Positions 50,667 through 54,551 are shown, counted from the first letter of the stretch. The stretch is 64,000 nucleotides of DNA from Tubulanus polymorphus (GCF_964204645.1 NW_027437462.1:1-64000); one strand, 5' to 3'. Program-made: numbers and translations. The notes: a model not told the origin generated them from the sequence alone.

Positions 50667-53278
50667 ATGGGCACCAAAGACGACGAATATGATTATTTAT
50701 TTAAAGGTAAAATGTTTAAAATCACTTTAAATCATGTTTCAAATTGTATATTTTGTGTGGGTTTATTTTCGTACTGATCAGTGATGAGTAATAGATTGTG
50801 AAGGACCCACCCACCTCGAATCGAACCCTCCTCCTCCGTCGTTGCTACGACGTACAAACTACTCGTCGTTGTTGCTACTGGCCTAAACTATTTACGAATT
50901 TAATTCGCCTCTGAGAATTAATAATGAGTGATTTCGATCAGTTATTTATTCGCAGCACCTCGTTCACTTATCTGACAAACAATGGTTAAAATTTCTATCG
51001 GCTTTGATAGTTATAATCAGCTCACAAGTTTATTTCTAATCCTCTCATTGATAGGTCCCGCCCGCCCCAGAAAGCCCCGTTCATGGCATCCCTCTGATTA
51101 AATTCACATCAGTTTTAATCTGTTAGTAACACATGTTTAACCCCGGTGTAGTAAGAGATAGGTCGTTATACACGCAGGTTTATTTTACTCCTTCCGCTAA
51201 AATTTCAACTCTCAACATTTTGGTAGGTATTAATTTACCCCTGGGGTTAGGGGTGGGAGTTCAGACGTCTAGGTTTGTATGGTTCTGAATTTACTAAAGG
51301 TTTGATTTTAAATTGTATTAATTCCAAATTAAGAATTATTGAATGAATCATTGACTTGTTGACTGTTTGTGTGCTTACTGCGGAACATACGTGGACCGTG
51401 ACCAGGATAAAGTATGTGTAATGTTAATTAGGATCTCTGCGGACCGTGACTAGGACAGTTAGACCTATGTCTAGTGGAGTCACTATACTGAAGTATGTCG
51501 TAGTCATGTAGTAGAAATATTCACTTATAAAAATGTCTGATGTTGAAAATGTAGAAGTTACTGTTTACAGTCAAAACATTGAAGATCAATTCAGTGATTT
51601 TAGTGAAACAAGCGTCGACAATATTGAGCAAACTACTAGTGTTGAGGATCTCGAAACTATTGATGATTTTAGCGAGGAGGATCTAGAAACTGCTAGTGAG
51701 GATTACGATTGTGATAGTCTTAGTTTAAGCTTTTACAACGAACAACCTCGAGTTAACACTAAACCTTGGACAGATATTCCACGGGATATCACAAAAAAAC
51801 GTAGCGTCAGTGATGAGACATGTTTTGATTATTTTGATTTTATTTATAAAGGTTAGTCGTGTCTATAAGGGGGGGGGGGGAGAGGGTGCAGCAGGGTAAA
51901 CTGTATTGTATCAATTGAACACAGATGTTCAATTGATCTGTGTTAAAAAAGCAATTATTTCCGAGTATTTTTAATTTCCGCTTGGTGTCAAGGGAATTTA
52001 TTGTTAATGGGTTTGAGAGTTATTAGGGTTACGCAGTAAACCGTGTGTATAACGCCATCTATTGATAGAATATAACAATGTTTGTATCGTCTCCGCGTAA
52101 CTATGGTGATGATGATTATGATATGATATGGAAAGGTATTGTTGCGAGTAGCGGAGTGACGGAGCGAGTGTTGATTGTAGTTGAATATTTACCCCGTTTG
52201 TTTGTTTATTTATATAGTTGTGTTAATTGGAGATTCTGGAGTCGGTAAAAGTAATTTACTCAGTCGATTCACGAGAAATGAATTTAATCTAGAAAGTAAA
52301 AGTACGATAGGTGTGGAATTCGCTACCAGGTAAAGTACACACGACCCCTGTCTGTCTATCTGTGCCCGCCACCTATTGGTTTGAATACTAACTATATATT
52401 GTATGTATTATAGGAGTATACAAGTTGATGGTAAAACGATTAAAGCACAGATTTGGGACACTGCTGGTCAGGAACGATATCGAGCTATTACTAGCGCGTA
52501 AGTATCATCATCTTCATCACAGCCCTCTATATTCTATCGTCGGCCGGTATCGCCACCTATTGTTTATATTTACAGGTATTATCGAGGGGCTGTCGGTGCT
52601 TTATTAGTTTACGATATCGCGAAACATTTGACGTATGAAAACGTGGAACGTTGGTTAAAGGAATTGAGGGACCACGCTGATAATAATATAGTTATTATGT
52701 TAGTTGGTAATAAATGTGATTTACGTCATTTGAGAGCGGTGCCGACTGAAGAGGCAAAAGCATTCGCAGGTTCGTTACTACGGCAACTTCTGCTGACACC
52801 TACTGGCAACGACGATAACTAATCCACAATGTTTTGTTTTTCAGAAAAGAACAATCTTTCGTTTATAGAAACTTCAGCTTTAGATTCGACGAATGTTGAA
52901 ACTGCTTTTCAAAATATTCTAACAGGTAAGACGAAGTTTAACGCCATCTATTAGCAACTCGTGGAAGCACGGTTTACCCAGAATGCTTCGCCTGCTTCCC
53001 CTACCATTTTCGCATGGTCTAAATTAGCACGTAAAATTTAAATACTATTTATTAAGAATCGATTAAAAAGGTACCACTGTATCGATACTAAACGCTGACA
53101 ATAGGGGTCGTTACTAACAAACATGGTCGTTCTGTCCGCAGAAATCTACCGTATCGTTTCACAAAAACAAATCCAGGAGGCGCCACATGAAGATGAGATA
53201 GCGGGACACAATGTTCAATCGATACGTGTTGAACCAACTGAAAATATCGACCGTAAAAATACGTGCTGTTCTGTATAG
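50667..53278 (+). CDS. RAB11: Ras-related protein Rab-11 (canonical first exon + last exon A)
   Basis: Exons 50667-50706 ([13 protein letters not shown]), 52218-52329 ([16 protein letters not shown]), 52414-52497 ([14 protein letters not shown]), 52576-52769, 52845-52925 (ETSALD), 53142-53278 ([16 protein letters not shown]). Confidence 0.98.
51533..51851 (+). CDS. RAB11: Rab11 alternative first exon 1b (106-aa acidic N-terminus)
   Basis: Open frame from aaaATG ending ..[10 protein letters not shown] + G|GTTAGT, a phase-1 donor equivalent to ..EYDYLFK G|GT of exon 1a. Confidence 0.7.
52078..52135 (+). CDS. RAB11: Rab11 alternative first exon 1c
   Basis: aca[22 protein letters not shown] + G|GTATTG, phase-1 donor. 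DDDYDMIWK aligns with DDEYDYLFK. Confidence 0.75.
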
Positions 53279-53611
53279 ATTAAACACCTATAGGTGGCGC
53301 CGCCAGTTCCGGTTCGTAAATTGTATAAAAATACTTCATGAATCACTCAATAGATGGAGTTACAATCACGTGTAGTTGTTAGTTGTATCGTGTAAATGTA
53401 GATGGCGTTAGTTATCAGAGTTTGCACTTTTAGTGGTACCTTTTTACACCGACTTTTCCTCCCTCTATCAATAAATATAAATAGCATGTTTTATTATTTT
53501 CTATTCCTACCTGTTTTCTGTTGCTATGGTGTTTGTCGTGTGTTCGCTCGTCGCTCACCGGTTGCTATGTGGCTCACTAGTTGCTATGGTTATATCGTTA
53601 TTCTGTTACAG

Positions 53612-53748
53612 AGATCTATCGTATCGTATCTCAGAAGCCGTTGCCGTCAGCAGACGATGAGAACATCAGTTCAAACGTACAAACAATTCGCGTCGAACCG
53701 ACTGAAAATATGAACGAACGTAAAAAAATATTCTGTTGTAATATGTAA
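53612..53748 (+). CDS. RAB11: Rab11 alternative last exon B
   Basis: ttacag| (E)[44 protein letters not shown], same phase as exon A. Confidence 0.9.
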
Positions 53749-54417
53749 CCAATGACGACGACGGCGACAACAATTTGGATTCTTTCACCGTGGCAACAAT
53801 GATGACAACTGATGATAAAACGTGTGCATGAACTATAACAATACGTGGAAGCGGTTTGTTGTTGTTGCTATGGTTACGGCGGACTGTACAGTAGTGTTTC
53901 TGTACTTAAAATACATATCAAACATTGACGTTTAGCGCGGCGTGGCTGATTAGGGGTTAACGTCCGGGGTCGACTGACTTGTATTTTACAGGAGAATGTG
54001 ACATTCCAATTACACACCCCTCTCTCAACTGATATAGTGTCGTCATCTGTAGTTTTCATTTATTGACATAAAGATGGCGCCACGTGTAACTGGCGCACCG
54101 TGTTATCTTTAAAATAAATATAAATTATATGAAAATTGATTATTATTATTAATTATAGAGAAGAATTGTAAGATATAAAACACTAAAAAAACATTCATTC
54201 ATTTTTTGCTTCTGTCAATAAAAATATTGTAAATTTATTACCAAATATTTCGACTTTCATCCAGTATATATCGGTTCTTATTGTTGCTGCAAGATGGCAG
54301 CACTATCTACTATCGGGTTATTTCTGCAACGAATGAATACACTACTAGCTCCATCTTGTGGTAACGTTTATAATTAGATATTGGAAGAGTTATTGTTGTA
54401 TTTTTGTTTCGTTGCAG

Positions 54418-54551
54418 AAATTTACCGTATTGTAAGTCAGAAACAAATCCGGGATAGTTCGGATAACGAATCTCCTAGTTCGAACAGTCAACCCGTAATA
54501 CCGCTCACAGATGGCGCCGGTGATCGCAAAAAACAATGCTGTTCTACCTGA
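54418..54551 (+). CDS. RAB11: Rab11 alternative last exon C
   Basis: ttgcag| (E)[43 protein letters not shown], same phase. Confidence 0.9.

Follow-up and report, generated by a model that had tools for sequence, protein, structure and literature searches.

Can a single Rab11 gene supply one GTPase core with several alternative C-terminal tails? The question is raised by a stretch of DNA of 64,000 nucleotides from Tubulanus polymorphus (GCF_964204645.1 NW_027437462.1:1-64000; hereafter the window, to whose first nucleotide all positions refer unless another sequence is named), which carries a Rab11 gene on the + strand from 50667 to about 55150. An initial annotation, made from the sequence alone, proposed that an invariant core in this gene is combined with three first exons and three duplicated, mutually exclusive last exons, here termed tails A, B and C. 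The reading that we favour, with a probability of roughly 85%, is that an old tandem duplication of the Rab11 last exon allows one GTPase core to be made with alternative tails through the choice of acceptor.

Judged by its sequence, the gene is a member of the Rab11 subfamily of GTPases. A motif scan recovered the G1-G5 motifs, including the P-loop, GNKxDL and ETSA, and the Pfam family PF00071 (Ras) matches both exon 2 and exon 4 over the curated cut-off. The Rab11-specific strings DDEYDYLFK, at the N-terminus, and EIYRIVSQK, at the start of the tail, are also present in the proteins named Rab-11A/11B by NCBI in Haliotis, Mytilus, Pomacea and Argonauta, and the core is near-identical to named Rab11 proteins when compared exon by exon. 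Protein comparisons were made with single exons, to which the carried-over G was prefixed for translation. This G, at 52925, is the final base of exon 5; it opens a split codon and is followed directly by gtaag.

Each tail is preceded by a pyrimidine-rich stretch and AG, lies in phase 1 with the carried-over G and follows the same layout, namely EIYRIVSQK, about 35 copy-specific residues, CCxx and a stop. Sequence and frame thus bear out the three same-phase exons of the initial annotation, and the positions it gave for three AATAAA hexamers are likewise correct (Table 1). An acidic-then-basic layout is common to all three tails, and their double-cysteine ends, CCSV, CCNM and CCST, are predicted to form the C-terminal geranylgeranylation motif. 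None of the tails contains a donor and each has its own stop. A canonical polyadenylation hexamer was not found after tail C. No further tail-like frames beyond A, B and C were found by a pattern scan of the whole window, nor any other tail copies by a six-frame search of the whole 268-Mb genome, and the sequence features of the Rab11 tail trio place it beyond chance.

Use of the tails was followed in four sequencing runs stored as assembled contigs, which were compared with the locus. Runs X4 and X6 represent one sample from a 2014 study and X2 stems from a 2024 study, while run X7 gave only a 32-base match. GT..AG junctions span every core intron in X4, X6 and X2, so these runs are RNA-derived. 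Exon 5 is joined to tail B in three runs from two studies (junction depth 19.4 in X4, 4.6 in X6 and 950 in X2) and to tail C in two runs from two studies (13.9 in X4 and 515 in X2), and in X2 the depths of the two junctions (950 + 515) add up to about that of exon 5 (1447). Tails B and C are both major forms, in a ratio of very roughly 60:35, contig depth being a poor measure. The possibility that only one last exon is ever spliced, which the initial annotation had itself raised, does not hold, as both junctions were found.

Tail A presents a different picture, and several observations on it weigh against a gene with three alternative tails. No junction from exon 5 to A is among the junctions listed for the three RNA runs, and tail A is absent from both 2014 runs (X4 and X6). 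Its use is read from a sharp coverage start in a single run, and the data are assembled contigs only, so that levels, strand and 3′ ends are rough. The start in question is that of an X2 contig of 500 bases (depth 43, about 3% of the depth of the gene in this run), which begins at 53139 and runs through A and the following spacer to 53637. Position 53139 lies three bases before exon A, and these bases (cag) also end exon 5; the single letter before cag in the contig mismatches the genome. Coverage of 52926-53138 in X2 is nil, and the depth table is fully accounted for without that interval; removal of the upstream intron at the acceptor of A would produce such a start. Judged by this coverage start, use of the acceptor amounts to a few per cent. 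It has a TACTAAC branch site and the weakest pyrimidine tract among the acceptors of the gene, which fits the low use of A. The proposal of three alternative last exons therefore stands for B and C, which are spliced to exon 5 in two studies, and for A it lacks a listed junction.

These properties of tail A are also those to be expected of a gene with two tails in effect, in which A would be a weakly recognised leftover appearing as splicing noise and only B and C would matter. The unlisted junction, the absence from the 2014 runs, the X2 depth of about 3% and the weak pyrimidine tract all favour such a gene, as does the A contig, which continues straight into B and shows nothing to indicate use of the AATAAA at 53470. 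Against it, coverage starts exactly at the acceptor of A, and a minor form in whole-animal RNA may be the major form in one cell type. The comparison of the copies with one another also bears on whether A is a leftover.

Table 1. Exons, tails and 3′ features of the Rab11 locus in the window
Feature	Position	Strand	Description and evidence
Exon 1a (first coding)	50667..50706	+	13 amino acids + 1 base; GT..AG junction to exon 2 in runs X4 and X2
Candidate first exon 1b	51533..51851	+	106 amino acids, acidic, + 1 base, then gt; open frame, same-phase donor
Candidate first exon 1c	52078..52135	+	19 amino acids + 1 base, then gt; sequence only
Exon 2 (P-loop, GDSGVGKS)	52218..52329	+	Pfam Ras 7e-11; RNA junctions
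Exon 3 (WDTAGQE, switch II)	52414..52497	+	Motif scan; RNA junctions
Exon 4 (GNKCDL)	52576..52769	+	Pfam Ras 7e-21; RNA junctions
Exon 5, donor exon common to all tails	52845..52925	+	Sequence; RNA junctions 52925->53612 and 52925->54418
Tail exon A (..CCSV*), minor form	53142..53278	+	Phase and reading frame; X2 contig 53139-53637, depth 43
AATAAA after tail A	53470..53475	+	Sequence; X2 contig continues into B
Tail exon B (..CCNM*), major form	53612..53748	+	Junction 52925->53612 in X4, X6 and X2
AATAAA after tail B	54113..54118	+	Sequence; X4 B contig ends at 54116; X2 contig continues to 54444
Second AATAAA after tail B	54217-54222	+	Sequence
Tail exon C (..CCST*), second major form	54418..54551	+	Junction 52925->54418 in X4 and X2
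3′ untranslated region of C form	54552..55153	+	Contigs 54415-55138 (X2), 54415-54767 and 54924-55153 (X4)

A comparison of synonymous (pS) and replacement (pN) change over whole exons found all three copies constrained, with a between-copy pS of 0.78-0.97, which is saturated, against a pN of 0.23-0.37. Within the first nine codons, the six changes between A and B are all synonymous, and a block specific to these two tails, VQ(S/T)IRVEPTEN, has been preserved through synonymous change. Protein identity among the copies is 45-63%, and their flanking intron and untranslated sequences are unalignable. Synonymous sites that are saturated, replacement sites that are not and flanks that can no longer be aligned show that the copies are old and have been kept by selection, and these substitution patterns indicate that purifying selection acts on all three tail frames. 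A tree of 63 Rab11 tails joins A and B in a supported pair (95/89) whose branches are of equal length (0.44 and 0.40). Tail A, although rarely used, thus evolves no faster than B, which is in heavy use; the placement of C in this tree is unsettled. Tail A has thus retained a 45-codon frame, the CC motif and its phase despite synonymous saturation relative to B, with a low pN (0.23 between A and B) and a branch no longer than that of B, all of which speak against a leftover, and we consider a gene with only two meaningful tails to be somewhat unlikely.

The divergence among the copies bears equally on the suspicion that they represent an assembly or haplotype artefact, for which the location of the window on a small contig of the assembly (C45) could be cited. 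Copies that are 45-63% identical in protein, with unalignable flanks and a single locus in the genome, are not what such an artefact would produce, and RNA contigs from two studies bridge A to B and B to C without a break. An assembly artefact was rejected on the strength of these continuous RNA contigs across the spacers, and we regard an artefact of either kind as extremely improbable.

The same contigs bear, within the limits of contig data, on the 3′ ends of the transcripts. The A contig ends where it merges with the path from exon 5 to B, and the B contig likewise reaches its merge point in C, indicating that some transcripts read through the next tail. The B contig in X4 stops at 54116, beside an AATAAA, and the RNA contigs of the C form end at 55138-55153, with a depth of zero from 55206. 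It could be argued that the tails owe their retention to differences in 3′ untranslated region and polyadenylation site, with effects on mRNA localisation, stability or translation, and that the proteins are interchangeable. The tails come with their own downstream sequence and hexamers, read-through forms exist, and both CCxx and the acidic-then-basic layout are common to all copies. All three tails, moreover, end in the same class of motif (CCxx), which would leave the class of anchor unchanged and weighs against a functional difference between them. Under such an explanation the coding parts need no constancy, yet constraint on the protein is seen in each copy, the VQ(S/T)IRVEPTEN block of A and B is kept through synonymous change, and two further Rab11 tails described below, t1 and t2, keep their own sequences across deeply diverged organisms (pN 0.07-0.27, pS 0.5-1.0). 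Selection for the untranslated regions with interchangeable proteins is, in our judgement, unlikely.

If, as we favour, one core is made with alternative tails, exons 1a to 5 would be joined and the donor at 52925/52926 would pair with one acceptor, at 53142, 53612 or 54418, each of which would open the end of the last helix (EIYRIVSQK) in phase 1. The first acceptor used sets the C-terminus, because every tail has a stop and no donor, and the tails downstream become untranslated. Some transcripts read on through the next tail and others appear to end near the AATAAA after B. The choice of tail would probably be made by acceptor strength and by the competing processes of cleavage and polyadenylation at the sites in between. 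As read-through forms have no splicing beyond the stop, they should be spared junction-dependent decay. One core, with the same switch-region partners, would in this way be provided with three different linkers from the G domain to the membrane, and by analogy with the vertebrate Rab11A and Rab11B genes these linkers could alter membrane targeting, tethering or regulation.

The three first exons, each supposed to be spliced to exon 2, fared less well. Exon 1a is the sole first exon joined to exon 2 in the RNA contigs. The candidates 1b and 1c end, like 1a, in an aromatic-rich sequence ..K and one base before GT, but their donors have zero coverage in the three RNA runs, in which contigs drop rare forms. 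A low-depth X2 contig (51452-51665) without a junction lies over 1b, for which there is no Pfam match, and RNA coverage over 1c is zero in these runs. Exon 1c resembles alternative first exons annotated by NCBI in Haliotis (..DDDVDFILK) and Mytilus (..DDEFDYITK), which belong to "isoform X1" of Rab11 and are located between the canonical first exon and exon 2. First exons of the 1b/1c kind are thus real elsewhere and already annotated, and 1b and 1c may give rise to rare or tissue-restricted forms. The contigs are interrupted at each branch and hence do not report on which first exon goes with which last exon.

The initial annotation had further suggested that this combinatorial arrangement replaces paralog expansion, which is overstated, as the genome also holds a divergent, single-tail Rab11-family gene. 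This paralog, located on the minus strand of another contig (G000:C7:20538457-20540000; locus L002), has the same exon borders as the Rab11 gene and 64% identity to it in exon 4, and its one tail ends in ..NPNCSC*. No second tail was found within about 10 kb downstream.

Tandem Rab11 tails are not restricted to T. polymorphus. A profile of tails A and B, searched against 1.8 billion representatives, matched the last-exon frames of Rab11 from many animals, which identifies the NVQ.I.V.PT block of A and B as a general Rab11 tail motif. No near relative was found in this search (best match 59 bits), and in a blastn comparison with the other loci retrieved, identity to the locus did not exceed about 80% (86% for the shortest fragments) and was confined to coding exons. 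A homologue search with tail B alone gave no candidate, within a length window that leaves out full-length Rab11. In the mayfly Ephemera danica, the locus of KAF4518705.1 carries exon 5 and, behind the same donor, two tails situated 111 nucleotides apart (..RKQCCQ* and EIYHIVSAKQ..PPCCQQN*), each preceded by AG and both in one phase. The gene model KAF4518705.1 (L012 10017-10431; KZ497623.1) fuses both tails into a 100-amino acid "hypothetical protein", so that a Rab11 locus with two tails has been misannotated.

A scan of metagenome contigs recovered 80 loci with Rab11 tails, eight of which have two. Seven of these eight (L015, L018, L031, L039, L040, L058 and L076), from at least five marine organisms, carry orthologous pairs of tails, designated t1 (..LPSGPVTTIKVAPT..) and t2 (..SPSNNVQTIHVGPTD.F.ERRKQCC..). 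Genomic contigs account for two of the seven; the other five are full-length mRNAs that join exon 5 to t1 by splicing and retain t2 unspliced downstream. Both t1 and t2 form supported clades in the 63-tail tree, and between organisms their pN of 0.07-0.27 contrasts with a pS of 0.5-1.0, at which synonymous sites are saturated; this contrast argues that each tail is under strong purifying selection across deeply diverged organisms. In one genomic contig (L015), a second, divergent Rab11-like gene is located directly downstream of the t1/t2 locus (3406-3800), recalling the contig C7 paralog of the T. polymorphus genome.

A further case is provided by L086 and L054, whose mRNAs are 98-99.9% identical and differ by a 157-base segment with an extra tail. 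They are two mRNA forms of one organism, and in L086 the extra tail may represent a cassette exon instead of a last exon. No second tail was found in Haliotis, Mytilus, termite-gut or gutless-worm host contigs within the flanking sequence covered. The two-tail loci of E. danica, the t1/t2 group and L086/L054 resemble the T. polymorphus locus in their donor exon, phase and EIY.IVS start, in having tails a few hundred bases apart and in that mRNAs with the proximal tail run through the distal one; they differ in having two tails rather than three.

The 63-tail tree, which included vertebrate-type Rab11B tails, probably not human, from four metagenome loci (L077, L078, L080 and L092), separates the A + B pair from t1 and t2, suggesting that the duplications are independent. 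A bolder interpretation, which we offer tentatively and regard as possible although on balance doubtful, is that tandem duplication of the Rab11 tail exon arose independently at least four times (in T. polymorphus, in the t1/t2 lineage, in the mayfly and in L086) as a recurrent single-gene route to a division of labour of the Rab11A/B type, with the tails sending the core into different recycling routes or cell types; in T. polymorphus, coupling of the tails to alternative first exons might then yield up to nine isoforms.

Additional features can be observed in the window. The octamer AGATGGCG occurs at 15 sites, compared to 1.1 expected, five of which fall in the Rab11 locus (52053-52060 and 52942-52949 on the minus strand, 53400-53407, 54072-54079 and 54509-54516), and one of the copies is placed 18 bases upstream of the exon 1c candidate's ATG. 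Its core resembles the YY1/Pho site, and the octamer may be a promoter or insulator motif of the T. polymorphus genome. Just downstream of Rab11, a stretch of about 115 bases (55580-55695) reaches an RNA contig depth of about 30,000 in X2, and numerous contigs run out of it in various directions, suggesting a dispersed repeat that is part of many transcripts; an Rfam search of 55200-56200 found nothing. Frames of about 550 amino acids are open on both strands at 39493-41344, where Pfam hits are scattered and form no stretch, and this region is probably not a gene but a repeat of biased composition. A single exon of 234 amino acids at 61224-61928 encodes all three SBDS domains.

The contribution of the hypervariable tail to Rab function is debated, and the usual tools for its study are artificial chimeras and deletions, as employed for Rab5a and Rab4a, in which the tail linker affects tethering (PMC7554592). 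A single Rab11 core equipped with two or three tails under selection, an arrangement repeated in separate lineages, constitutes a clean comparative and experimental system, in which isoform-specific knock-outs or tags would differ in the tail alone and independent origins permit a test of which tail features selection repeatedly favours. The fusion of the E. danica tails into a "hypothetical protein" furthermore draws attention to a problem of annotation. Full-text searches found no description of alternative last exons for Rab11 in the literature searched, in agreement with the novelty initially claimed, although the arrangement is present in other genomes and alternative Rab11 first exons have been annotated in molluscs.

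Among known systems, CDC42 and KRAS4A/4B are similar to the Rab11 locus in that one G domain is joined to duplicated terminal coding exons chosen by splicing, which swap a flexible linker together with the prenylation motif. Passages of PMC9882654 describe KRAS4A as having arisen by duplication and insertion of a fourth exon, and distinct roles of the ubiquitous and brain variants of CDC42 are reported in passages of PMC9663532. The proteins concerned belong to the Ras and Rho families, carry CaaX boxes and have two tails, between which the type of lipid anchor changes, whereas the Rab11 locus has three tails, all of the Rab-type CCxx. A switch of anchor type of that kind is not seen here, and as all the Rab11 tails keep the double cysteine, the difference lies in the linker. 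RAB28 is, like the present gene, a Rab with three C-terminal splice isoforms, for which excerpts of PMC7326575, citing Brauers et al. 1996, give alternative splicing as the source. It differs in being an atypical farnesylated Rab with CAAX in only two isoforms.

The vertebrate Rab11A and Rab11B proteins have nearly identical G domains and differ mostly in the tail, and the vertebrate-type tails that were recovered share the motif NV.xIxVxPT with tails A and B. The vertebrate pair represents a gene duplication with independent promoters, whereas one promoter and one core serve all the tails here, and by analogy A, B and C might be functional equivalents of Rab11A and Rab11B. The swapping of small-GTPase tails is thus known from CDC42, KRAS4A/4B and RAB28, and Rab11 adds a variant of it that is new to the literature searched; it has RNA support, is of old origin and recurs in several lineages.

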